DNA from: Diplonema japonicum
Taxonomy: Eukaryota; Protista; Euglenozoa: Diplonemea
Length of the DNA: 64,000 nucleotides
Assembly: GCA_964019335.1 (NCBI GenBank)
Contig: OZ025727.1
Coordinates: 310,001 to 374,000, forward strand
Reading direction: 5' to 3'
Under the pieces are notes generated by a model, which saw nothing but the letters and a program-made list of their open reading frames with translations, ran no database searches and was not told the origin of the DNA. Made by a program: the position numbers and the translations under genes. Every line of letters starts with the position of its first letter. The stretch's first letter is position 1. Positions 38,772 to 64,000 of this stretch are shown here, piece by piece.

Positions 38772-39147
38772 CGTAGAGTGGGGGGCTAAGATAGGGCTAA
38801 GACTTCTAGCACAATGATAAAGTCATGCTCTAGAACCAACCAGCTCTAATGATACTCTTAACAGGGTTTTTATTTTATTTTTCTTTGGTAATTTTCTCCT
38901 ATTTCTTGAAGAGAGTTTTCGTGGATAGTTTTGTTTAAATCCCTTGGAGCCACAAGTACGGGAGGAGAAACCGCTGTTGAAAGGGGATGAAGCGTCTCAT
39001 AAAGACCTCTTTTAACTCTGACATTCTTTTCTTACTACAGTATTTACCCCCCCCCCCCCCCTTTGTTTACTCCGTTCTTTTTTTAAAACCACACAGGTTC
39101 TATCCCCTTTTACAAACGAAAAGAAAAGAAAAAACACAAAACAAAGA

Positions 39148-42100
39148 ATGAGATTCTCCTTGCTGTTTATCACCCTGCTGTGCAGGGATGCGGCGGGGAA
39201 TATTTACAACAACAGAGACTGCAGGGATTGGGGAGCGCCCCAGAACAAGAACGAGTACCCCAAATGGCACTACTGCAACAGACGGCCTGGGGACGGCAAC
39301 ACGAGGTATAAATTTCTGACAGACAAGATGCCCCCCGCCGATGTGCCTCCGCACAAGTGTGGGAAGGGCCTTGTTCTCCGCCACGATGCAGACGGCATTG
39401 TCTGTGCGAACTATGGTCTAGGAGATGACTACGGCGGGCCCTGCGATGACTTGACGTGTTGCGTGAAGGAGGTGTGCACTTCCTACAAGTGTCCCAAGAA
39501 TTGGGTCAAGAAGTCGGACGCCGACCAGATATCATGCCTCTTCGGATGTGCTGAAGATCTTTGTTGTGACCCTGTGCTCCCTGTCCCCAAGAGGAACCCC
39601 GCAGGCCTCATCTTCGTCGACCGCGACCCCAAGAGGTTCTCCTTCGGAGGGAACATTACCATTCTCCGTGCACCCGATGAGACGGACATCAAAGAGTACC
39701 GCCTCTACTGGGGATACGCCAACATGGTTCGAAAGGTCCCTTCTTGCGGGTTGAAAAACCCTGTCTCGTGGGAGACTATCAAGTGGCGCTCCTCAAAGCT
39801 GATCAAGAAGGTGAAGGTGACCGGGTGCGACATCACCTTCGAGCTTCCCATGGGCACGAAGCCACCCCCACGTGACAGCTCTTGCACCATTAAGACAAAC
39901 CGACAGGACAGAATCACTGCGGGAACGGACCCCTGCAACCCTCACTACATCATCGTGGCAGCGTGGAACGAGAACGGTGAGAAGCCCGTGATGGCTACGA
40001 ACGAGCAGCAGGTGGGCCCCCGTCACCCGATATCGGACTACGAGGATGAGTACGACCTACCGTGCGCAGAGGGCGGCATCACAATGGGACACGACATCCC
40101 TGCTTCGGAGGACTACGTGTTGGGAAAGCGAAACGGCGTAAACTCTGCTGCCGAGTGCGCGAAGCTCTGCAGAGAATACAACGGTGCGAAGGGCCCCTGC
40201 CGCTACTGGACCTGGGCCTACCCGAACAAAGGGCACACCGCAAAGACCTGCTGGATGGAAAGCCAGATCCTACAGAAGACACACTACGGCGTGCGTGTTG
40301 TAGGACCTGCGGTGTGCCCTACGAAGGACGGCGAAAGACCCACTGGAAAGGAACGCCCACGATGCAACAGATGGATCAGAAAGGCCAGCCAAGCACCTTT
40401 TGCGGATGAGAAGGGACGCAACCAGTGGATTGCAAAGGGTCTGCACTGGGTACAGAAACCCAACCTCCCCGATGTCCCGCTGGGCCCGTATGACAACGCG
40501 GAAGAATGCCAGGCCATCTGCGACATGGACATGCTGTGCATAGGTTTCGTGTACATGAAGCGTGACCCCTCTGACAAGTGGTTCCACAGCTGCTTCATGA
40601 TCCGCCAGGATGTGGGCTTCAAAAGCAACATATTCTACGACAGCTGGATGTGCTCGCGTGAAGGCATGGCGCCTCTTCTGAATGGGTACACCATGAACAC
40701 CAACCCATTCGGCTACACGAAGTGCTCACAGGCTCCGTCCACCGAGGAGCAAGCCAACGACGTGGACTGTTGTGCTGCACTGTGCGACGCTGACAAGAGC
40801 TGTGCCTCGTTCACATTTTGGGGTGACAAGAAGTGCCAGCTGTTCAAGTCGTGCAGTATTCAAAAGGTGAACAAGGTCGAAGGCTGCGCGTATGAGTCCT
40901 GCTACGACGGCTACGGGGCGGTAACTTACACCAAAGACACAGCACGGTCCATGTCGGTGGTGGATAAGTGGCCGCAGGCTGGCGGTGACGGTGGTATCCC
41001 TATCACTGTGCAGACGAATGGCGGGATGGACGGCGTGGAGGTTACGTGCGTCGCGTGGAGAGACGGTAAGCCGACCCGCCCTGCTGTCCCAACCACAGTC
41101 AAGGCCATCAAGTCGCAGGCTTCGCTTTCGACTTCGTTCGCCTCTGCTGTCGTCAAGGATGACATAGCGGAGATGCTCATCTCACGCGAGGAGATGTCTG
41201 CGTGGATCGATGACGGGCAAAAATACAAGATCCGCTGTGGGGTTGACGACCCCAAGCCCCTGGGCCTTCCTGACTACGTCGACAGGACCATCGAGACAAA
41301 TTTCGTTGGCGGTTACCAGCTAGTGGGCGCCGGCTACTGCAAGACTACCTCCTGCAGCAGTGCCAAAGCTATCATCCCAAAGAACACCCCGTACACACTG
41401 GCAGGCTGCAAGAAGGAGTGCGACGACCATGGCCCCAAGTGCACCGCCTTCTGGTACCGCAACCACGACGGTTGGTGCCACCTGAAGATCGACGGCTGCA
41501 AGTACGACAAGGTAAATAAGGACGCAAACGTGCAGTGCTTCCGAGTTTGGAAAGGGAAGAACCCCTTCCTCCCAGGGTCGGACATCTGCCCATTGTCCTG
41601 CACTGGGACCTGTGCATTCAAGAGACAACTCGGTGTGTACGAGAGGGATGTTTTCATCCCCCCTAGACAGATCTGTCAGGCAGGTGATGAATGTGCCACA
41701 AGCCCTTGCGGGATGGGACAGACTTGCAAGGACCCCAACACGGCTCCTAGCAGCCTCAACGATTACGTGTGCAGCTGCGATGCCGACCCGAGCGTCACGG
41801 CGATAGGAACAGCAGCAATGTGCATTCTTGACGAGTGTGCTGCAACCCCTTGTGGTGCGGGCCAGGACTGCTCTGACCCAGACACAGGCTACGGAAGCTT
41901 GAACGACTTCTCTTGCTCTTGCAAGTCTGACCCCACCGTCACACAAACAGGAGGCCCTGCAACGTGTCCACCACCGCAAAAGGATGAATGCACTGGTGAT
42001 CCCTGCGGTACAGGGCAGACGTGCAATGACCCCTCGAAGACGACTACTGACATCAAAGACTTCACGTGCACATGTGACAACGACCCTGCCACAAATGCGA

Positions 42101-45100
42101 CTGCGAAGAAGGCCACTTGCGAACTTGATGAGTGTGCAGCAAGCCCGTGCGGCCCCGATCAGGACTGCTCCGACCCTGACACGAGGTACAGTGCCCATGA
42201 CAACTACGAGTGCACCTGCAAGGCAGACTCTACAGTTAAGACGGTCGGTGTTGCCGCCGTGTGCTCGCAAGACGAGTGCTCGTCAAAGCCATGCGGTACT
42301 GGTCAGACATGTAATGATCCTACCAAGACGCCCACGACCCTCAAGGACTATACATGCACCTGTGATAGTGACCCTGCGACAAAGGTCACAGGCGGAGTAG
42401 CAACTTGTGAGCTTGATGAGTGCGCCAGCAGCCCTTGCGGAACTGGCCAGGCCTGCACCGATCCCAACACCAAGTACAGCTCGAAACTTGACTTCGAGTG
42501 TGTGTGTCAGGCAGATGCAACCATTAAGAAGATCGGAGCTCCTGCCACCTGTTCAAAAGATGAGTGTGCTTCCGATCCCTGTGGCACTGGGCAGACTTGC
42601 AACGACCCGACACCCACCATCCATACTGTGAAGGACTACACGTGTACTTGTGACAGTGACCCTGCGACAAAAGCTACTGGTAGCAAGGCAACCTGTGTAC
42701 TAGATGAGTGTACCAGCGGTCCGTGTGGTGCTGACCAAGACTGCACTGATCCCGACACCAAGTATAGCTCGCAGAGCGACTTTGAATGCTCCTGTAAAGC
42801 TGATGCAACAATCAAAAAGATTGGTGCCTCTGCCACCTGTTCGAGGGATGAGTGTGCTTCCGATCCCTGTGGCACTGGTCAGACTTGTAACGACCCGACA
42901 CCCACAATCCACACTGTGAAGGACTACACGTGCACTTGCAACAATGACCCTGCGACGAAAGCTACAGGTGCGAAGGCCACTTGCATGCTTGATGAGTGTG
43001 CCAGCAGCCCTTGTGGAACAGGCCAAGACTGCACCGACCCCGACACAAAGTATAGTTCGAATCTTGATTTTGAGTGTTCTTGCAAAGCTGACACGAGTAT
43101 CAAGAAGGTAGGTGCTCCTGCGACTTGCACGAAAGATGAGTGTGCTTCCGATCCCTGTGGCACTGGGCAGACTTGCAACGACCCGACACCCACCATCCAC
43201 ACTGTGAAGGACTACACGTGCACTTGCGACAGTGACCCTGCAACAAAGTCCACCGGCACGAAAGCAACCTGTGTTCTGGATGAATGTGATAGCGGCCCGT
43301 GTGGTGCTGATCAAGACTGCACTGATCCCGACACCAGTTACAGCTCTCAGTTTGACTACACATGTTCCTGCAAGGCGAGCCCTACCATCGTGAAGGTCGG
43401 TGGCACCGCTACTTGTGAACGAGATGAGTGCGTGTCGTTGCCTTGCGGTGCTCAGCAGACTTGCTCTGACCCCAATAAGTCACCGAAGAGCCTCAAGGAC
43501 TACGTGTGTAGCTGCAACAACGACCCATCGACGGCCACAGGAACACAAGCAACGTGTGAGTTGAATGAATGTACTAGTGCACCTTGCGGCACGGGCCAGG
43601 TATGTGTAGATCCTGACACGAGGAAGGGCTCTGCATGGGACTTTACGTGCACTTGCATGGGCGACGCTGCGACCAGTAGCACAGGTAGAGCAGCTTTGTG
43701 TGTGATTGACGAATGTGTCACCTCACCTTGTGGGTCGCAGGCATGCACTGATCCTGACACTCTTGCGAGTAGTGCTGGAGACTTCGTGTGCTCCTGTCCA
43801 GGAGGTTCACCAAGCAAGGTAGGCGGCATTGCGACATGTAGCACAGGTACCGCCGACGAATGCGCCACCAACCCGTGTGGTGCCCAGCAGTGCAACGACC
43901 CAAACCAGAAGGCATCTAGCACTGGCGATTACATCTGTTCTTGTATTTCTGGAACAGGCACGGCAACTGGAATGCCTGCAAACTGCGTTCTTGATGAGTG
44001 CCTCAGCAACCCTTGCGACAGCCAGGCCTGCACTGATACGAACACAGACCCTGCTGCTGTGAACGATTTCACGTGCTCGTGCCAGGCACCTGCAACAGGG
44101 ACTGCAACCGGCGCCAAGGCAGCATGCGTCGTTGATGAGTGCCTTACATCGCCCTGCAATGCATCGCAGACTTGCAGTGACATCTCTGCAGCTATGTATG
44201 ACTTCACGTGCACGTGTGACAACGGTGTACAAGCTACTGGTGGGAGCGCAACATGTGAACTCGACGAGTGTGCTGCTATCCCGTGCGGAGCCGGGCAGAC
44301 CTGCAACGACCCCAACACGAAGTACACCAGTCAGCACGACTACACATGCACTTGCATCTCCGATCCTACTCGCCTGCAGACAGATGGACCTGCGCTGTGC
44401 TCTTACGACGAGTGCTCTGCCAACCCTTGTGCCACTGGGCAGACATGCAGCGACCCTGATAAGGGCACTCACAAGCTCAAGGACTTTATCTGTACGTGTG
44501 CCAATAGTGTCAAAGCAACTGGAGGGAGTGCGACTTGTGAGCTGGACGAGTGTGCTGGTACTCCTTGTGGCACAGGGCAGACCTGCAACGACCCCAACAA
44601 GAAGTACACCAGTCAGCACGACTACACATGCATGTGCGACAGCGATAGCAGTATTTTCCAAGTCGATGGTCCTGCGCAGTGCACATATGATGAGTGCTTG
44701 AATTCTGTTTGCGGTGTGGGGCAGACATGCCTTGACTCAAACGTTTCAACCCGTTCGCTGAAAGACTTCGTCTGCACGTGTACCAATGGTGTGAAGGCGA
44801 CAGGCGGTGCTGCTACGTGTGAGCTGGATGAGTGTGCAGCTAACCCCTGCGGTGCTGGGCAGACGTGCAGCGACCCCGACACAAGGTACGTCATGCAGCA
44901 CGACTTTACGTGCACATGCGCTGGGGACACAAAACTATTCCAAGTGGACGGCCCTGCCACATGTGAGAACGACGAGTGCAGCAAAAACATTTGCGGGACA
45001 GGACAGACATGTTTGGATCTCAACAAGTCGGTCCACTCTCTAAAGGACTTCACCTGTACATGTTCTAATGGTGTGAAGGCTACCGGCGGCGCCGCCACTT

Positions 45101-46218
45101 GTGTGCTAGACGAGTGTGCGGCTGCGCCCTGTGGTGCTGGGCAGGCTTGCTTCGACCCAAACACGTTATACAACATGCAGCATGACTATATCTGCACCTG
45201 CAACTCTGATACAACGCTTGTCCAGGTGGACGGCCCTGCACTGTGTACCTATGACGAGTGCGCGATGGTAGGCTGCGCGACTGGCCAGACGTGCAAGGAC
45301 AGGAACGTCTCAAGGCGCTCATTGAACGACTTCACCTGCACGTGTGGCAACGGGGTAAGCACCGTAGGCGGCAACGCGACGTGCGAACTGGACGAGTGCA
45401 CTGGAAATCCCTGCGGTACAGGACAGGTTTGCACCGACCCTGACTTGAGATACAACTCGCAGCAGGACTTTGTGTGCAGTTGTGGTAATGACACAAACCT
45501 GGTAAAGGTAGGCACTCCTGCTGAATGCACACTGGACGAGTGTGCAAGTAAGCCATGCGGCACCAACGACAACGAACAGGTGTGTGCTGACCCCGACACG
45601 TCTGCGAAGAGCTTGAACGACTTCACATGCACATGCCAGAACGGCGTGCGCACCGTTGGTGTGAAGGCAACATGTGAGTACAACGAGTGCAGCGCGGCAA
45701 CCTTTCCATGCGGCGACCCCTCGGAGCAGGAGTGTATGGACAGCAACAAAACTTACGCGGCTCAGCATGACTTTGAGTGCATGTGCAAGGGCAACATTGA
45801 CAAACGAGCAGTAGACGGTCCCGCACAGTGCAGGAACGATGAATGCGAGTGGACACCTTGTGGTGAAGGGCAAGCTTGCGAAGATCCTGTAAAGAGCTGG
45901 AGCAGTATGGAGGACTTTATATGTACGTGCCAGAACGGGGTCAGTGCCGTGGGCAGCAGGGCAGTTTGCTTCACTGAACCGCCTCATGAAAAGCTTAATG
46001 CTGCCCAGGATAATGATGACTCGAATGGCTACCTGCTGCCCCTCATCTTCCTTGCGTCCGTGCTGGGGCTTATTGGTCTCGCTGCTTGTTGTGCGTTGTA
46101 TTTCCACAGACAGCGGCAAGCGCTCGATATTTCCACGTTTACTAAAACGGTGGCGGACTACGACCCATCCCCTATCTCCGAGCTGGGTGCTCCCGCAGTG
46201 CATTACGCGCAAATCTGA
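39148..46218 (+). CDS. 2356-aa type I membrane protein: signal peptide, Cys-rich modules, about 4 PAN/apple-like domains, 30 EGF-like repeats, TM, short tail
   Basis: SAAECAKLC..C.YWTW..CW-type PAN motifs; 30 x (D/N)EC...CG.GQ.C.DP..D(F/Y).C.C...A.C at 41683-45969; TM YLLPLIFLASVLGLIGLAACCALYF. Confidence 0.9.
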   Translation: MRFSLLFITLLCRDAAGNIYNNRDCRDWGAPQNKNEYPKWHYCNRRPGDGNTRYKFLTDKMPPADVPPHKCGKGLVLRHDADGIVCANYGLGDDYGGPCDDLTCCVKEVCTSYKCPKNWVKKSDADQISCLFGCAEDLCCDPVLPVPKRNPAGLIFVDRDPKRFSFGGNITILRAPDETDIKEYRLYWGYANMVRKVPSCGLKNPVSWETIKWRSSKLIKKVKVTGCDITFELPMGTKPPPRDSSCTIKTNRQDRITAGTDPCNPHYIIVAAWNENGEKPVMATNEQQVGPRHPISDYEDEYDLPCAEGGITMGHDIPASEDYVLGKRNGVNSAAECAKLCREYNGAKGPCRYWTWAYPNKGHTAKTCWMESQILQKTHYGVRVVGPAVCPTKDGERPTGKERPRCNRWIRKASQAPFADEKGRNQWIAKGLHWVQKPNLPDVPLGPYDNAEECQAICDMDMLCIGFVYMKRDPSDKWFHSCFMIRQDVGFKSNIFYDSWMCSREGMAPLLNGYTMNTNPFGYTKCSQAPSTEEQANDVDCCAALCDADKSCASFTFWGDKKCQLFKSCSIQKVNKVEGCAYESCYDGYGAVTYTKDTARSMSVVDKWPQAGGDGGIPITVQTNGGMDGVEVTCVAWRDGKPTRPAVPTTVKAIKSQASLSTSFASAVVKDDIAEMLISREEMSAWIDDGQKYKIRCGVDDPKPLGLPDYVDRTIETNFVGGYQLVGAGYCKTTSCSSAKAIIPKNTPYTLAGCKKECDDHGPKCTAFWYRNHDGWCHLKIDGCKYDKVNKDANVQCFRVWKGKNPFLPGSDICPLSCTGTCAFKRQLGVYERDVFIPPRQICQAGDECATSPCGMGQTCKDPNTAPSSLNDYVCSCDADPSVTAIGTAAMCILDECAATPCGAGQDCSDPDTGYGSLNDFSCSCKSDPTVTQTGGPATCPPPQKDECTGDPCGTGQTCNDPSKTTTDIKDFTCTCDNDPATNATAKKATCELDECAASPCGPDQDCSDPDTRYSAHDNYECTCKADSTVKTVGVAAVCSQDECSSKPCGTGQTCNDPTKTPTTLKDYTCTCDSDPATKVTGGVATCELDECASSPCGTGQACTDPNTKYSSKLDFECVCQADATIKKIGAPATCSKDECASDPCGTGQTCNDPTPTIHTVKDYTCTCDSDPATKATGSKATCVLDECTSGPCGADQDCTDPDTKYSSQSDFECSCKADATIKKIGASATCSRDECASDPCGTGQTCNDPTPTIHTVKDYTCTCNNDPATKATGAKATCMLDECASSPCGTGQDCTDPDTKYSSNLDFECSCKADTSIKKVGAPATCTKDECASDPCGTGQTCNDPTPTIHTVKDYTCTCDSDPATKSTGTKATCVLDECDSGPCGADQDCTDPDTSYSSQFDYTCSCKASPTIVKVGGTATCERDECVSLPCGAQQTCSDPNKSPKSLKDYVCSCNNDPSTATGTQATCELNECTSAPCGTGQVCVDPDTRKGSAWDFTCTCMGDAATSSTGRAALCVIDECVTSPCGSQACTDPDTLASSAGDFVCSCPGGSPSKVGGIATCSTGTADECATNPCGAQQCNDPNQKASSTGDYICSCISGTGTATGMPANCVLDECLSNPCDSQACTDTNTDPAAVNDFTCSCQAPATGTATGAKAACVVDECLTSPCNASQTCSDISAAMYDFTCTCDNGVQATGGSATCELDECAAIPCGAGQTCNDPNTKYTSQHDYTCTCISDPTRLQTDGPALCSYDECSANPCATGQTCSDPDKGTHKLKDFICTCANSVKATGGSATCELDECAGTPCGTGQTCNDPNKKYTSQHDYTCMCDSDSSIFQVDGPAQCTYDECLNSVCGVGQTCLDSNVSTRSLKDFVCTCTNGVKATGGAATCELDECAANPCGAGQTCSDPDTRYVMQHDFTCTCAGDTKLFQVDGPATCENDECSKNICGTGQTCLDLNKSVHSLKDFTCTCSNGVKATGGAATCVLDECAAAPCGAGQACFDPNTLYNMQHDYICTCNSDTTLVQVDGPALCTYDECAMVGCATGQTCKDRNVSRRSLNDFTCTCGNGVSTVGGNATCELDECTGNPCGTGQVCTDPDLRYNSQQDFVCSCGNDTNLVKVGTPAECTLDECASKPCGTNDNEQVCADPDTSAKSLNDFTCTCQNGVRTVGVKATCEYNECSAATFPCGDPSEQECMDSNKTYAAQHDFECMCKGNIDKRAVDGPAQCRNDECEWTPCGEGQACEDPVKSWSSMEDFICTCQNGVSAVGSRAVCFTEPPHEKLNAAQDNDDSNGYLLPLIFLASVLGLIGLAACCALYFHRQRQALDISTFTKTVADYDPSPISELGAPAVHYAQI

Positions 46219-57495: not shown

Positions 57496-58420
57496 TGTTG
57501 TTGAAAAAAAAAAGAAAAAAAAAAGATTTTTCTACTGGAAAAGAATTACAAGAATGAATGGTGAGGGAGAGGAAAAAGATAATATGAAAGAAACAAAAAA
57601 AAAAAAGAACTTATTCTTTTTCCCTTTTTTTCTTCCCCACCACGAAACGGAAAAAAAAAAAAAAAAGAAGAAAAAAAAAGAAGACCACATTTCTTATTTG
57701 AGATCATCCCCCCCCGCTTTTTTTTCCCTGTCTCTTGCAGTTTTTCAAGAAGAAAAAAAAATTGAGCCTGTATAAAAGGAAAGATGGCAATGCGAGTTGT
57801 TCGGTTCTCACCTTGTTTATCTTGCTTCACCGCAGTCTTCTTACCTCTCTCTTGCGCACCTGCTTGGATAGCGTAGGAGTAGGCTCAAAAGGAAAGAAGG
57901 AAAAAAAAATAATAATTTCCCCGTTCCCCCCCCCTTATTTTTTGCTTCTTTTAATTCACACGGCGAACGACGGGAGAAGAATTGAGAAAAGAAAAATGCA
58001 AAAGAAGAAAAAAAAAAAGGAAAAGAGAGAGTGCGTTGGCTACGAATAACAGCCAGTTCTTTCTTTTTCTTCCGTTTTCACTTTTTTCCTTCCCACCTCC
58101 ACACCGTAAGCAGGAATTAGCACAAATAGCAACTTTCTTTTTTTTTTTTTTTTTTTTTTTTTTAACTAGCTCTTTCCTGCACCCCCACTGCACAACAAAA
58201 ACGCAAAGATATTAAGAATATAGCTGTCGGAAAACCCTATTCTTGAGAGAGAGGAAAAAAGAGGGGGGAAAAAAAAAACGTGTTTCGAAAAAAACGAAAT
58301 ATCTAACCAAAAGTTCACCGTTTTTTTTTTTCTTCGTTCTGATTTTCCGACATATTTTCTTTTACAAGTTTTTAATTATTTCCTTTTGATATTTTAAAAT
58401 TCTTTTTTTTTTTTTTTTTC

Positions 58421-58459
58421 CACCAACGATTCTAAAGCTACAGTTTCTGTACTTTATTG
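58421..58459 (+). other. Spliced-leader (mini-exon) sequence, 39 nt, at the 5' end of the retrotransposon
   Basis: CACCAACGATTCTAAAGCTACAGTTTCTGTACTTTATTG: contains the conserved euglenozoan core CAGTTTCTGTACTTTATTG, has the canonical 39-nt length and a diplonemid-like 5' half. Confidence 0.92.
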
Positions 58460-58591
58460 GTGTCCGACCGTGCCAATAAAGTATCACTCAGCAACGGTTT
58501 GAAAAGAAAATACAAATATTGGAAGTTGAAGCGCGACACAGATCAGCAACGTAAAGGAGAAGAGAAGAGAAGAGAAGAGAAGAAAATCGAG

Positions 58592-58633
58592 TCATATCGA
58601 TCATATCAGATCATATCAGATCATATCAGATCA
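58592..58633 (+). repeat. (GATCATATCA)n, about 4 copies, in the element 5' UTR, preceded by (AGAAG)n
   Basis: Read directly. Confidence 0.8.
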
Positions 58634-58675
58634 CAGCAAACACATTGACAATCTAAGCAACCGCGTCAGTCTAAG

Positions 58676-61600
58676 ATGGACGTTCACAAAGCTTTGAAGG
58701 GGTACGGGATGACGGCCCGCGGGAAGGGGTACGGGATTGGAAACGGAAACTCCTTCTACGGAGTGGTCGGAGAGAAGACGGGAAAGAAGGGGAGCGACGT
58801 TAGGCGTCGCATGATACAAGAGCTGCGAGGAAGCGAGGAGTACCGGGTGAATGTCATCGGAGACTACGACCTGTACTGCTCCCAGCACGCCAGGGAGGGG
58901 ACCGCCGCGGACCCGGTTACCATCCAAGCCACCGCCCGCGCACTGAAGACCGACATCCACCTGATTACGGCCGACGGCGGCGCCCTCATCGTCTCCCCTA
59001 TCGTGGGAGAGTCCAAGTCCAAGAAGCAGCCCATTCACGTCGCCTTCGACGGCCGGGCATACCTCAACGCCACGGAGCCGTTCAACGTGAACGTGCTGAA
59101 GAAAGCTATGCAGCAGTTCAAGCTGCCACGGGTCGGGATTCCAACCTCAGACGGAGAGGCGAAGGCATGGAGGGGACCGAACAGCAAGCCACCACGGAAG
59201 GAACCGCAGGCAAAGAAATGCTGGCTCCTCGAGCAGGGACAGTTCGACCTACCTTTCATAGAGTGGGAAGAGCTGGTGGCAGGAAAGGATGGCATAGCCA
59301 TCGCGACCGAGGTCAACGTGGAGGAGGCAGAAAAGATGACCTGGGACGGGAACAAGGCAGTCCTCCTCAAGCGCAACGGCAAGGGACGATACGAACACGA
59401 CGTCGTGCTCAAAGCGGCTGGAGAGTACTCGAACAGGACAATGTTCTTGCACGTACTGAGCGGAAAGATCTCGCGCTCTCAAAAAAACAAAAACACGGTG
59501 GGCATTGACCTAGCCGCGATGTACACGCGGGTAGCATTCGTCGTCTCGAAGACGCACACCCCGGCCCAGACTTGGGAGAGGGTGACCTCCGAACCCCGCA
59601 AGCTGGTCCAGGAGATGCTGGGCTGTAAGACGATCCACAGGATCGACAAGTACGTGGATGGACCGGCCCCAAGGGTTGACGTGCTCGTCACGATCGCAAC
59701 CGAGAACCGCCGCCGCCTCGTAGGTGCATCCGGGAAGATGGGGATCTTCGTCAAGCCGAAGGACGTGGAGAAGTCCCCTGTCGCCTGGCTCCCGAAGGAG
59801 ATCACTCTGGAAGAGGCACTCGAGCTGGCGGAGACTGAGAAGCAGGGGTTAGCGCTGCGCGAATCCGACGGCCGTCTCGGGGTGAGGACATCGGAGGAGA
59901 GGAAAACCACGCTCCTCGACAAGGTATTAGGCGAGGAGGAGCGACAACGCGGGCAGCATGGGGAGCCCAGGTGGCGTTTGTCGGGACTGTACGGGCAGTG
60001 CGGAGCCGAACACGTTGAGGCGATACTCGAGGCGATTAAGTGGGAGGCCGTCCCACTACACGGCGGATGGTGCAACAGCATGAGGTGCTGGTACATCCGA
60101 GGGGGCGAACCCCCAACCACGTCACTGAAGATCACGTCCCCAACTGGGCGGGTCCTCAACTGCAGGATAGCTCCCGACGTTAGAAACCCACCCGCCAAAA
60201 AGACACCGCCAGCTCAGTCCTGGGGAAGGCCGAAAACGGGGACCACAAACAACGCGGGCAAGTCGTACCTCGGAGCAGTGACGGGGTCCTCTCAACCAGA
60301 CCACAAACCACCAGCTTCAGGAAAGAAGGTTGCCCCTGCGGGTAAAGCCGCCCCACCGAAGTCCGGTAAGTCGCCCACAACATCGAAGAAAGCCGATCCC
60401 CCGGCCTTTGAGGACCGCCTCACAGCAATCGAGAACGCACTTCGTAAACTTGCAGGGGAACCGGTCAGCGACGTCAAGCCGCCGGCTGAGGTGGTCAGTC
60501 TACGGAGGGAGAACGCGGAGCTACGGGAGGAGGTCCGGCAGATGCACATCCAGATGGCCGCGCTCACCGAGCAAATTAAGAGACTCACGGAAGCGACGCT
60601 CACGAAGCCCGTCCCCGGGAACCGGGCCCCGATGATGCGCCCTGCTGCCGGGGAGGAGATGATGGACGACTCCGAAGATGACTTGGGTCCCCCCCAACTG
60701 ACGATGACACCGACATCGACTTGGACGAGGGCCCCGCCGACATTGACGACTGCCTGGGCAAGGGCATCTGCCACGTCTACAACGGGACATATCAATGCTG
60801 GAAGGGGGTGTGCCACTACTGCGGCGGGAACATCACAAAGAACAACCCAGCACAGACCTGCATATTACCAGACTGCAAAAGGGTAAAATGCCGCGGGTGC
60901 GAACAATGCGAACAATGACTCCATGAGGGCTCCCCCCAAACCCACCCCCCAAACCCATTCCCTCCGCCCCGTTCCCATCCTTCCAAATACAATCCGATAC
61001 GCTTATCTGACATGAAATTTGAACGTCTCACCGAACAGGGTATCGAACCCCACCCCGGACCAGAGCCAGAACACGAGAAATTCACCATTTTCACACACAA
61101 CGGCTCATCACTTAACAACAGGCTGAGCGAGTACTCCACCGTCCTCCCGGACGCATTCTAGGAGACAGCCCTCACGGCTCAGACGCAGCTGGAAATCGAA
61201 CACGTGCTGAGAGACGATGACTGGGGCAAACGATACGCCAGATTCTGGAGCAAGCCACAGCCAGGCAGAGAGTCCAGTGGTGTCACATCTCTGACGATAG
61301 CGAAACGGGGTGGTCTAGGAACCCTGGTGAAGAAACCACGTACGGCGGTGCGCTGTGAAACGAATGGGCCGCACAAGGACAGGTGGTCACACGTGAAGAT
61401 CTCACTCGATGGAAGCAAACGGTGGCTTCACCTGATCAACGTCTACTGCCACTCGGGCCAGGACCAAGCCAAGACGAAATACCGTGAAGAGCTTCTCCAC
61501 TACATCCTTTGCCGTCTTAAGTTCGAACTGGGAGACGTGCCGTGGTGGGCGATTTCAACACGGACGAAGTACGATCCCCCACGTTAAGGAAAGCTATACA

Positions 61601-63607
61601 GACAGACTGGGTAGACGCCGCTGCGTTCTGTGCAAGAAGGGATGGTGTACAGGCGGAGGACACGTTCGTTAGGACCAACTGCAGCACGAGGATTGACAGG
61701 GTCCTGCTGAATAACATCGCGGCCCAAGGTCTCGAACATTGCGGAGTAAACGATATGATCACCGGGTCGGACCACCGATGCTTGTCGGTGACACTCAACA
61801 TCCCAGCTTTTCGTCAACAAGTCCTGAGGTACACCATCCCACAGGAGATACCGAAGACCAAGAAGGCGCCTGGCGAGGTGGCGAAGGCACTGATGCAGAA
61901 GTCGAGGTACCGGGAGTTCATAGCAGCACAGGAGCCCACCGAAGCTTTCTCGGAGATATCAGACCTCGCAGAGGAGTACCTATTACATGGGTACAAGGGG
62001 ACGACGCGCAGCGTGTACACCGGGAGAGGCAAAGTACGGGAACCTACGAAATCGGAGCTAAGTGCGAGGTCGGCGGAGTCGGCGGTCGGAGCAGCATCGA
62101 ACAGACAACAAAGACTGGAAAAGCTGAAGCACAAGATCCGCAGTGCGAAACAGCAAATGCTAGGGCTTTATGAAAACGGACACTGCGGTCCGCCGCCGGT
62201 AGAGTTAAGGAACGTCCTCAGAAATATTGCGACTCTAGGAGAAGAACTGAAGGTTGACAACTGCCAGGTGGACGCGACAGGGGGTATCGACAGCATCAGG
62301 GAGGAGCTGGACATAGCAGAGGACTTCGCTCAGGGAATGCTATCAGAGCTACTCCAATACCGCAAGAGAATGCAGACGAAGGCCTACGAACGCTCAGTCC
62401 GTGCTGACTTTGGGGAAGAACGCAAGCACATCACAGCCTGGGTCAGAGACCGCCCAAACCAGAGAACGGACGTGGTTGAGGCAGCAGACGGAGGGGTGAC
62501 GGCGAACCTACAGGAAATGGACAAGGTGATGCGGAACGCGTGGTCGGGCGTCTTCTGTGCGCGAACACCCGAGGAAGAGCCACAGTATGAGCGGTTTGCA
62601 CAACGTTACGGGGACCTGATCAAGAAAGCCCCAATGGCACGGACTCCCATCACTGCAGAACAGCTGAGGGAAGTAATCAGGAAGAAGCCGGAGAAAGGAG
62701 CATGTGGCGTGGACGGTTGGCGGATGAGTGAACTGAAGCGTCTCCCAACGAGCATCCTGAAGGCTTTCGCAATCTAGTGCCACAACGGCTGTCTCTCGAC
62801 CTCATGGACGCCCTGGGGATGGACCAATCCATAGGGAGAGCACTCCAAGGGATGTACACCCAAATCACAAGGAGGTTCAAGTACCCCATAGGAGTGGGAG
62901 ATACGTTTGAGACAACGAACGGAATTCTCCAAGGATGCCCCCTGTCAGTCATCGTCGTCAACGCCCTGTTGTCCATCATGGTGCGGGCAGTCGAGCAAGT
63001 CGCGCCAGACGCCGAAGTGCTAGCCTACGCTGACGACGCATACCTGCTGGCAAAGCTGCGTGGCTCACTACAAGCTGCGGTCAATGGGACATTGGAGTTC
63101 TGCGACCTGACGGGGATGGAAATCAACAAGGAGAAGACTGTTGGTTTCGGCACTGCTGAAGATTTCAAGTCGAAAGTCATAGGAAACCGAACGGAGATGA
63201 GGAAAGGCTTGGAGGTCGCGGTACCCTACAAGACGGTGACAGACCTCTGCGGACTGGGGGTGAAGATCAACACACGCAGGACAGGAACGACGTGGAATAA
63301 ACCGACCACGGGGGCGCTTGGCTCGCTGGACCGACTGGGGGGCACAAGGATTGCTTTCGAAACCAAAGCACACTTGGTCAGCACGACGGCGGATGAACAG
63401 AAGAGCGTGAAGTCCCTCATCGCAATAGGTGGGAAAACGACTATGGGTTTCGCCAGGAGGCCCATCTTCGCCACCCACTCCACGCACGACAAGCTGATGG
63501 AACTGAAAGCCGCTTACAAGCGAGACCGCATCACGCGACTCCGCAAGACGCTCAAGGCCTCGATTGGAACGAAAGCAATGCTCCAGAAGGGGAGTATAAA
63601 TAGATAG
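58676..63607 (+). pseudogene. Disrupted retrotransposon polyprotein: OTU-like - ORF1-like/coiled coil - Cys finger - 2A-like - APE - RT - C-terminal motif
   Basis: Frameshift in the C7 run at 60689-60695; in-frame stops at 60916 and 61159; frameshift at about 61542; deletion of the N-terminal RT motifs at about 62777; deletion of most of the C-terminal region at about 63390. Confidence 0.8.
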
Positions 63608-64000
63608 CCCCCCCAACCCACCCAAGGGCGGCCCTCCATGAGGGGGTTTGTCCTGCACTTTGAGTTTTTTTCTATATTCACTCAGTGTGTCGGGGTGTTT
63701 CAGAATGTCGTGAAAAAAAATCAAAAAAACCACTTTTTTACCGCCAAGGAATGACTTTACCATGCCTCAGGTCCTCAGGCCAACACGGGAGCCTCGAGGT
63801 GGCAGTGAAAGTCATTTCTTAGCTTGGCAGCTATGATTTTATACATCCCCCCCATCCCCACCTCCTTACAATTCCTCCTTGCCTCTCGCTTCATTATTTA
63901 TTTATATATTTTTCTCTTTTTTTTTTTTTTTTTTAGATCAATTATTCACACCAGTTGGGAGGCCCTTTTTTTTTCGGGTGGATCAGTAAAGCAGAATGAT

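Follow-up and report, generated by a model that had tools for sequence, protein, structure and literature searches.

A spliced-leader-headed family of non-LTR retrotransposons in Diplonema japonicum with a conserved head hairpin, an in-frame UGA and T-tract insertion

How does a retrotransposon obtain a defined, capped 5' end in an organism whose mRNAs receive their caps by trans-splicing? In Euglenozoa every mRNA is capped via the spliced leader (SL) and defined RNA polymerase II (Pol II) promoters are almost unknown; for a euglenozoan retrotransposon the defined capped 5' end is a real problem. We considered a 64,000-nucleotide (nt) stretch of the diplonemid Diplonema japonicum (contig OZ025727.1 of assembly GCA_964019335.1, positions 310,001 to 374,000, forward strand), here called the window; simple coordinates below are positions in the window, and all features lie on its plus strand. 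At 58421-63664 it contains a retrotransposon copy that begins with an SL, and the initial annotation, made from the letters alone, had suggested that such an element uses the SL as its own way round the cap problem. Our best overall explanation, to which we assign a probability of roughly 0.55, is that the SL head is heritable and working, that transcription starts from this head, and that the proteins are produced by stop codon readthrough combined with a 2A-type peptide.

The segment 58421-63664 is one old, broken copy of a dispersed non-long-terminal-repeat (non-LTR) retrotransposon, or long interspersed nuclear element (LINE), with an apurinic-type endonuclease (APE) and a reverse transcriptase (RT). 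The assembly searched was a HiFi assembly of 62.5 Mb in 132 contigs, in which the window belongs to contig C80; the genome note on strain YPF1604 describes a HiFi assembly of 62.30 Mb and 118 chromosomes (PMC13598402). A search with the element produced 96 matches. Near-full copies at 98% identity number at least eight, and a second subfamily, B, matches at about 79%. The intact element is 6,836-6,867 bp long. Six independent young insertions with differing flanks are mutually 99.8-99.9% identical, one insertion lying within a segmental duplication (L071 and L080) being counted once, and both reading frames are open at four independent loci. In keeping with a LINE, many copies are 5'-truncated at various positions, target site duplications (TSDs) are present, and the two ends, on reading, are unrelated to each other. 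As had been proposed, the family is dispersed over many contigs, in T-tracts, and is not of the CRE/SLACS type that resides in SL arrays.

The window copy is 98.2-99.4% identical to the young intact copies and is thus older. Its 5,244 bp, compared with about 6.84 kb in the intact element, result from two large and three small deletions. The large ones removed about 329 bp after 62771 and about 1,257 bp after 63389, as seen from BLAST matches and loose contig ends; the small ones, located behind 60688, 61159 and 61538, took 1, 6 and 7 nt, respectively. This copy is defective. Two rearrangements were seen in other copies. The loci L071 (C69:70044-78500) and L080 (C69:34638-43100) have identical flanks and are 99.99% identical over 8.4 kb at a distance of about 35.4 kb, pointing to a segmental duplication of recent date with an intact element inside it. 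The copy at C98:9968-10275 contains about 11 tandem repeats, spaced at 27 nt, of a segment near the C-terminus of the first open reading frame (ORF1; element positions 2290-2327).

The SL head occupies 58421-58459. It was compared with the exon shared by the six SL RNA genes that have a promoter, and 38 of the 39 nt agree: 58422-58459 correspond to SL nt 2-39, and 58421 is C where SL nt 1 is A. The leader is of the diplonemid type. The initial annotation was thus right in placing an SL at the 5' end, but the leader is copied from nt 2 and is not the full 39-nt exon. The first nucleotide of the head varies (T, C, A, G) even between copies that are 99.9% identical, and all 17 loci with a complete 5' end begin with N+ACCAACG... 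immediately after the flank. The host SL forms the extreme 5' end of the template RNA, and reverse transcription reaches SL nt 2. The variable first nucleotide is compatible both with a start at the head and with renewal of the SL in each cycle.

The head was then followed through the genome by pattern searches; these counts of SL copies and heads are given among the matches listed. The anchor GTGTCCGACCGTGCC marks the element head at 42 loci, and always stands behind at least TGTACTTTATTG, that is, behind at least 12 nt of SL before GTGTCC. The whole SL is present in 27-29 of the 42 heads. Some 13 heads start near SL nt 24-29 directly behind a T-run, which would be consistent with the TTT of the SL acting as microhomology to the T-rich target. 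A head without SL, with AG directly before GTGTCC, was found at none of the 42 loci among the matches listed. The proposal that full-length copies all start with the SL therefore agrees with the survey: each of the 42 family 5' ends carries SL sequence. The same survey disposes of an artefact, namely a chimeric assembly or an SL RNA gene lying by chance beside a retrotransposon. The same junction of SL and element is present at 42 loci of a HiFi assembly, with unrelated flanks and TSDs, neither an SL RNA promoter nor an SL RNA intron occurs at the junction loci, and the family is also present in independent sequencing runs from other studies. This refutes the artefact, whose probability is practically nil.

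Immediately downstream the head can fold. The anti-SL hairpin (58450-58483) has a 5' arm at 58450-58460, comprising SL nt 30-39 and G40, a loop at 58461-58472 and a 3' arm at 58473-58483. Its 11 perfect pairs span the SL 3' end and G40, and it appears in the centroid folds of three copies. The hairpin masking the SL 3' end, part of the original proposal, is thus a family-wide structure. Both subfamilies, A and B, retain it, as do two further families, and it recurs in at least four families overall. The anti-SL changes are wobble-compatible only; at locus L041 two positions of the anti-SL arm are changed and both still pair through G-U. The loop motif CCGTG is equally spaced in families whose loops otherwise differ. 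A scan of metagenomes for SL+G followed by an anti-SL within 30 nt gave no match, and a scan with the 3' half of the SL gave 120 mostly transcript contigs, none similar to ORF1 or ORF2. As a lead only, the Pr77 module of L1Tc has a CGTG downstream promoter element (PMC8190864) that resembles the loop CCGTG.

Conservation extends beyond the hairpin. The 5' untranslated region (UTR; 58460-58675) consists of about 80 conserved nt (to approximately 58538) and a following part with short tandem repeats of variable length. Element nt 40-118 are 89-92% identical between the subfamilies, compared with about 80% in the ORFs, and the next 130 nt or so are unalignable. The base after the SL is G, mostly within GT, in 192 of the 222 genomic SL copies. 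In a control set from related diplonemids, comprising some 110 ordinary transcript contigs with an SL, only about one in four has G there. The conserved hairpin, the conserved nt 40-118 and the G at position +40 look like signs of selection acting on the head. In the variable part the window has tandem repeats (AGAGA/GAGAA)n and (ATCATATCAG)n at 58541-58640, which differ in length from copy to copy and cannot be aligned between subfamilies.

Where do such heads come from? Six SL RNA genes have a promoter; they share an upstream block of about 50 nt, the 39-nt exon, an intron beginning GTACCC... and a T-run terminator. No master copy of the element was found behind an SL RNA promoter: all six promoters lead into the true intron and the genes are uninterrupted. 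The assembly thus contains neither an SL-less nor a promoter-driven master, yet jumps have been recent, and SL-headed copies themselves must be the source. This raises the likelihood that the SL itself is the element's answer to the cap problem.

The SL RNA genes are at C4:650074-650137, C15:779064-779479, C51:59127-59190 and C59:512399-512808; four of them are arranged near contig ends as two pairs, with about 350 bp between the members of a pair. With some 216 retro-copied leaders against six promoter-bearing genes, the SL array may be collapsed in the assembly or may be truly small.

One possibility is that the ancestral head was acquired by a template jump onto SL RNA, which would have given the element the exon, the first intron bases and a fold like stem-loop I, later trimmed. 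This concerns origin only and is compatible with a heritable working head. In its favour, the SL RNA gene likewise has GT behind the exon, the TTTATTG of genuine SL RNA also finds a pairing partner in a CAATAAA some 24 nt further on, and an SL RNA-element chimera does exist (L058, described below). However, past the GT and the CAATAAA the sequence cannot be aligned with the SL RNA intron, and the likeness could be convergent, as any anti-SL strand must contain CAATAAA. We regard this origin as rather unlikely, though the least so among the alternatives.

Traces of trans-splicing and of template jumping occur in the same genome. In four variants the SL is joined exactly at an AG: after SL nt 17 in L010, after SL nt 23 in L007, and in L015 and L059 within the 5' UTR, with the hairpin deleted. 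A partial second leader is present in only 7+1 of the approximately 222 genomic SL copies, and two stacked ones were not seen. Were re-splicing the main route, such leaders would accumulate as they do in dinoflagellate retrogenes. Locus L033 (C2:150563) is a retro-copy of SL RNA itself, exon and intron, which follows a T-rich flank and begins with nt 2. Locus L058 (C30:484556), likewise behind a T-rich flank, consists of SL RNA from nt 2, AAA, and another element without its own SL, the signature of an RT template jump. In other families the junctions show TG/TTG microhomology and not AG (L066, L067). The chimera and the microhomology junctions indicate that RTs of this genome also jump between templates.

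These traces bear on two alternatives. The simpler is an ordinary trans-spliced LINE, with SL-less masters that have AG before GTGTCC, whose heads are copied, functionless leaders. As all euglenozoan mRNAs are trans-spliced, a full-length cDNA must carry the SL in any case; the four variants are joined exactly at AGs, and retro-copies of RNAs other than LINEs are also SL-bearing (L063 and L064, and the SL RNA itself in L033). However, no SL-less head occurs among the 42, despite at least six recent insertions that are 99.8-99.9% identical, and the explanation must hold likewise for each of several SL-headed families. Nor would it account for a hairpin and nt 40-118 conserved well above the coding divergence, or for a G after the SL far commoner than in ordinary mRNAs. 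We consider a passive scar quite improbable; the DNA-encoded SL looks heritable and functional.

The main rival is that the SL is re-made in each cycle. Transcription would then be by read-through only, trans-splicing would use an AG in or upstream of the element's own SL, and the resulting duplicate would collapse during reverse transcription, by slippage between the repeats or by a homology-guided switch to the SL of SL RNA or of another mRNA, perhaps with the aid of the hairpin. Re-trans-splicing at internal AGs is indeed seen in L007, L010 and six more copies in other families, template jumps are documented (L058 and the TG/TTG junctions of L066 and L067), and element copies stop at SL nt 2 exactly like the retro-copied SL RNA of L033 and L058. 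On the other hand, a repeat of 16-22 nt would have to collapse in more than 90% of events, two stacked partial SLs were seen in no copy, and families lacking the hairpin behave alike. Renewal of this kind seems unlikely to us, if less so than the passive scar.

Two further sets of SL sequences were observed. Many environmental diplonemid transcripts (L082, L085, L099, L108, L129, L135, L147, L151, L153, L188, L191) have the SL followed in tandem by SL nt 7/8-39, with joins not at AG; this is possibly a library artefact, in which RT stops near SL nt 6-7, at modified cap-proximal bases, and jumps. Other SL-headed families, whose heads continue with GTCGTTCGTG... or GTCGTCTGTG..., are located at contig ends beside repeats of the (CCCGCAAA)n type: L039, L040, L044, L049, L050, L060 and L067 (on C5, C6, C9, C24, C20, C118 and C62). 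Their SL heads face the contig end and some are eroded against the repeat, so that they look like telomere-attached retroelements. An old copy of such a telomere family, L060 (C118:8400-9050), has CG-to-TG changes along the head including the SL (CAACG to CAATG), suggesting cytosine methylation of old repeats.

The 3' end is equally uniform. In the window the 3' UTR (63608-63664) has a stem-loop at about 63624-63656 and ends in ...ACTTTGAG without poly(A). All copies end in ...ACTTTGAG directly against the T-rich target, again without poly(A). The last 45 nt or so form the stem-loop; a C/U difference between subfamilies A and B is compatible with pairing, so that the stem is preserved. The TSD copies flanking the window element are both TTTTTTTC, upstream at 58413-58420, where it is the end of a 17-nt T-run, and downstream at 63665-63672. 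In the family, TSDs are about 5-15 nt long; they consist of T-runs, apart from one clear case of TTTGT(T). The 3' hairpin, the lack of poly(A) and the T-tract insertion with TSD, all noticed initially in the single copy, thus hold family-wide.

All long ORFs of the window are on the plus strand, and the window element therefore lies in sense orientation inside a one-directional gene array. At six of eight copies an ORF on the same strand follows just downstream, and at none of the eight is it clearly opposite; the family thus lands in sense orientation, in pyrimidine tracts before host genes. Integration is by target-primed reverse transcription into T-tracts, with T-rich TSDs and in sense orientation. 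The longest open frame of the window, 2,398 codons at 39022-46215, lies outside the element.

The 3' module was also seen elsewhere. In runs X1 and X2, from related organisms, the segment 63623-63671 is found in several settings that are unrelated to one another. One contig of run X1 joins SL+G (58460) to 63608, just past the stop codon, the skipped part ending in AG; this may be a short RNA of SL plus 3' module, or a derivative resembling a short interspersed nuclear element (SINE).

The coding region adds a further layer. Intact copies have one frame of 2,177 codons with a single stop, an in-frame UGA between ORF1 and the part encoding 2A, APE and RT. The proposed single-ORF 2A polyprotein is thus correct as regards the one frame, but a UGA would have to be read through. 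In the window the ORF1 remnant (58676-60918, with the UGA at 60916-60918) is frame-shifted by the 1-nt deletion after 60688. It comprises a pseudo-OTU domain, an RRM-like middle, a coiled coil, an acidic stretch and a Cys-rich C-terminus. ORF1 of intact copies encodes 747 amino acids (aa). A word-based search for homologues of ORF1 gave no match, and full HMMER gave 21 hits.

The OTU-like N-terminus is homologous to OTU proteins: phmmer E-values are 7e-7 to 8e-4 to proteins with a strong Pfam OTU domain in the matched part. The direct Pfam match is weak (E 0.01, below the cut-off). The initial reading needs amending in one respect: the catalytic Asp/Cys/His are replaced by Asn/Ser/Ala in both subfamilies (GDGNC to GNGNS; HY to AY). 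To judge from these residues, the domain is a predicted pseudo-enzyme. The middle region has no Pfam family and no Foldseek match at E <= 0.001. Its AlphaFold model (pLDDT 81.6) has only RRM-type matches in VIA-align (Z 7-8), perhaps reflecting a common arrangement, and we tentatively call it RRM-like.

After the UGA comes an in-frame spacer with the 2A-like peptide (60919-61062). The spacer has 31 codons and is conserved between subfamilies at the protein level. It is followed by (M/K)KFERL(T/I)EQG(I/V)EPHPGP, located in the window at 61012-61062 and ending ...EQGIEPHPGP; the ending is EQGIEPHPGP in subfamily A and EQGVEPHPGP in subfamily B. The stop context is CAA-UGA-CUC in A and CAG-UGA-CUA in B. 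The apparent start of ORF2 is Met in A and Lys in B, which has no AUG. Reinitiation at an AUG thus cannot apply generally, and the simplest interpretation is readthrough. The predicted 2A-like peptide is present family-wide and is of the HPGP type. The C-terminal core in both subfamilies matches the class B 2A consensus EEGIE-P-(H/N)-PGP, HPGP members of which are active in reporters (Rao et al. 2025, PMC12338488).

The APE and RT assignments were borne out on an intact sister copy (L071). PF03372 was found there with E 3.8e-9 at ORF2 aa 45-259, N-terminal to the RT, and PF00078 with E 6e-21; a Pfam scan of this sister gave no restriction-like endonuclease (RLE) family and no RNase H. The best solved relatives of the RT are LINE-1 ORF2p (E 1.9e-14) and R2 (E 4e-12), and the nearest named matches are automatically annotated Diplonema papillatum proteins at 44-46% identity. 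In the window the APE region (61140-61790) is broken by the 6-nt deletion after 61159, with an in-frame TAG at about 61160, and by the 7-nt deletion after 61538. The RT region (62560-63150) lost its N-terminal part through the deletion of about 329 bp after 62771. The end of ORF2 (63390-63607, stop at 63605-63607) follows the deletion of about 1,257 bp at 63389/63390, which removed the C-terminal domain with a C2HC finger. Intact copies have this finger, C-x2-C-x12-H-x4-C, after the RT.

Combining these observations, a life cycle with a heritable working head can be outlined. New template RNA would start at the head, with A at SL nt 2, preceded in most copies by a pyrimidine, and would run to the T-tract that the TSD places just past the 3' stem-loop. 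Such an RNA would resemble a trans-spliced mRNA with no need of a 3' splice site. The hairpin would sequester the SL 3' end and G|GT, a sequence that otherwise reproduces the splice donor of SL RNA. The 3' stem-loop and the ...ACUUUGAG tail would serve as the recognition and priming site of the RT. Translation would first yield ORF1 protein; a minority of the ribosomes would continue past UGA-CUC/CUA, and the class-B-type 2A would then free the APE-RT protein. A precedent exists in the Pr77 of L1Tc/ingi, an internal promoter for Pol II to which TBP and SNAP50, factors of the SL gene, bind and which yields unspliced translatable RNA (PMC8190864). A more specific form of this scheme is possible, although we hold it at less than even odds. 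The SL, the hairpin and the 80 or so conserved nt would constitute an internal start module giving SL-bearing, cap-competent, translatable RNA without trans-splicing. The unit would be packaged like an SL RNA gene, with an SL start and a T-run stop, and oligo(U)/oligo(dA) priming would mirror the poly(A)/oligo(dT) priming of LINE-1.

Several points weigh against a heritable working head with the start, the readthrough and the 2A activity proposed. The variants L007, L010, L015 and L059 show that read-through transcripts are trans-spliced and still retrotranspose, and thus a start at the head is not the sole route. Families without the hairpin likewise keep a single SL, so the hairpin is unnecessary for that. 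An Rfam scan of the whole window gave no family at threshold, hence no known 5' ribozyme. Capture of a promoter from an SL RNA gene was tried as an explanation and rejected: the upstream 200 nt scored 20 against the 5' UTR, where the shuffle mean was 17.8 and 108 of 500 shuffles scored as high. Avoidance of T-runs inside the element is uninformative, the longest run being 4 in 6.84 kb where 0.57 runs of at least 5 are expected at 15.8% T. The 2A-like motif has F at position 15 from the end, one register off the invariant W (at about 16) of class B, in which W-to-F keeps partial activity and register shifts abolish it (PMC12338488). Finally, unassembled sequence could hide a master copy.

To our knowledge, the 5'-end problem has worked-out answers in two cases only, L1Tc/ingi with Pr77 and CRE/SLACS with their insertion in SL RNA genes. 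If the proposed scheme is true, an inherited leader guarded by a hairpin over the splice donor would be a third answer. It would also offer a compact natural sequence with which to probe Pol II start sites, cap and SL recognition and splice-donor choice in diplonemids, an abundant and poorly studied marine group. The family also provides natural material for examining UGA readthrough in combination with an HPGP-type 2A, as well as target-primed reverse transcription that is directed to T-tracts and needs no poly(A).

The combination of features was initially suspected to be new, and no description was found in the literature searched. Full-text searches for SL-headed retroelements gave only dinoflagellate cases, and SL-headed LINEs are unmentioned in the D. 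papillatum and D. japonicum genome papers, the diplonemid intron paper and the trypanosomatid mobilome survey. In the dinoflagellate relict-SL retrogenes, as here, the SL enters DNA by retroposition and re-splicing at AG leaves partial tandem leaders (eight here). However, the carriers there are retrocopies of host genes with accumulating truncated leaders, whereas here they are autonomous LINEs with one complete leader in about 86-96% of copies and a dedicated conserved hairpin.

The 3' end finds its parallel in the stringent-type LINEs (R2 and members of the L2 clade such as UnaL2), in which poly(A) is not needed and a conserved 3' stem-loop with a short fixed tail forms the exact 3' end. 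The family likewise has a 3' stem-loop, then a fixed tail, and no poly(A); it differs in that the target is a T-tract with the tail abutting the T's, which suggests bottom-strand priming by oligo(dA). As to the 2A-like motif, it resides here in a diplonemid LINE, whereas class B is reported mainly from double-stranded RNA viruses, ticks and the TSAR clade (PMC12338488).

CRE, SLACS and CZAR are also euglenozoan retrotransposons tied to the SL, and their transcripts start with it as they are inserted in SL RNA genes. These elements are site-specific in SL RNA genes and have a restriction-like endonuclease and poly(A) (PMC12278014). The family described here is instead dispersed in T-tracts, has an APE N-terminal to the RT, and carries SL sequence in every family head.

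L1Tc and ingi share more. They too are dispersed APE+RT LINEs of trans-splicing euglenozoans, with a short conserved 5' module that is common to several families and addresses the 5'-end problem, a 2A-type peptide before the APE and a zinc finger after the RT. On the other hand, the first 77 nt here are the SL and the anti-SL hairpin and not Pr77 with its ribozyme resembling that of hepatitis delta virus (HDV), in agreement with the negative Rfam scan. Poly(A) is replaced by a 3' stem-loop and T-tract insertion, and there is a separate pseudo-OTU ORF1, a UGA readthrough layout, an HPGP/class B 2A and, by Pfam, no RNase H. Membership in L1Tc/ingi fails on Pr77 and poly(A), but as a working analogy these elements are the closest. 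The SL-headed LINE is apparently an undescribed way to live in a genome where every mRNA carries an SL.

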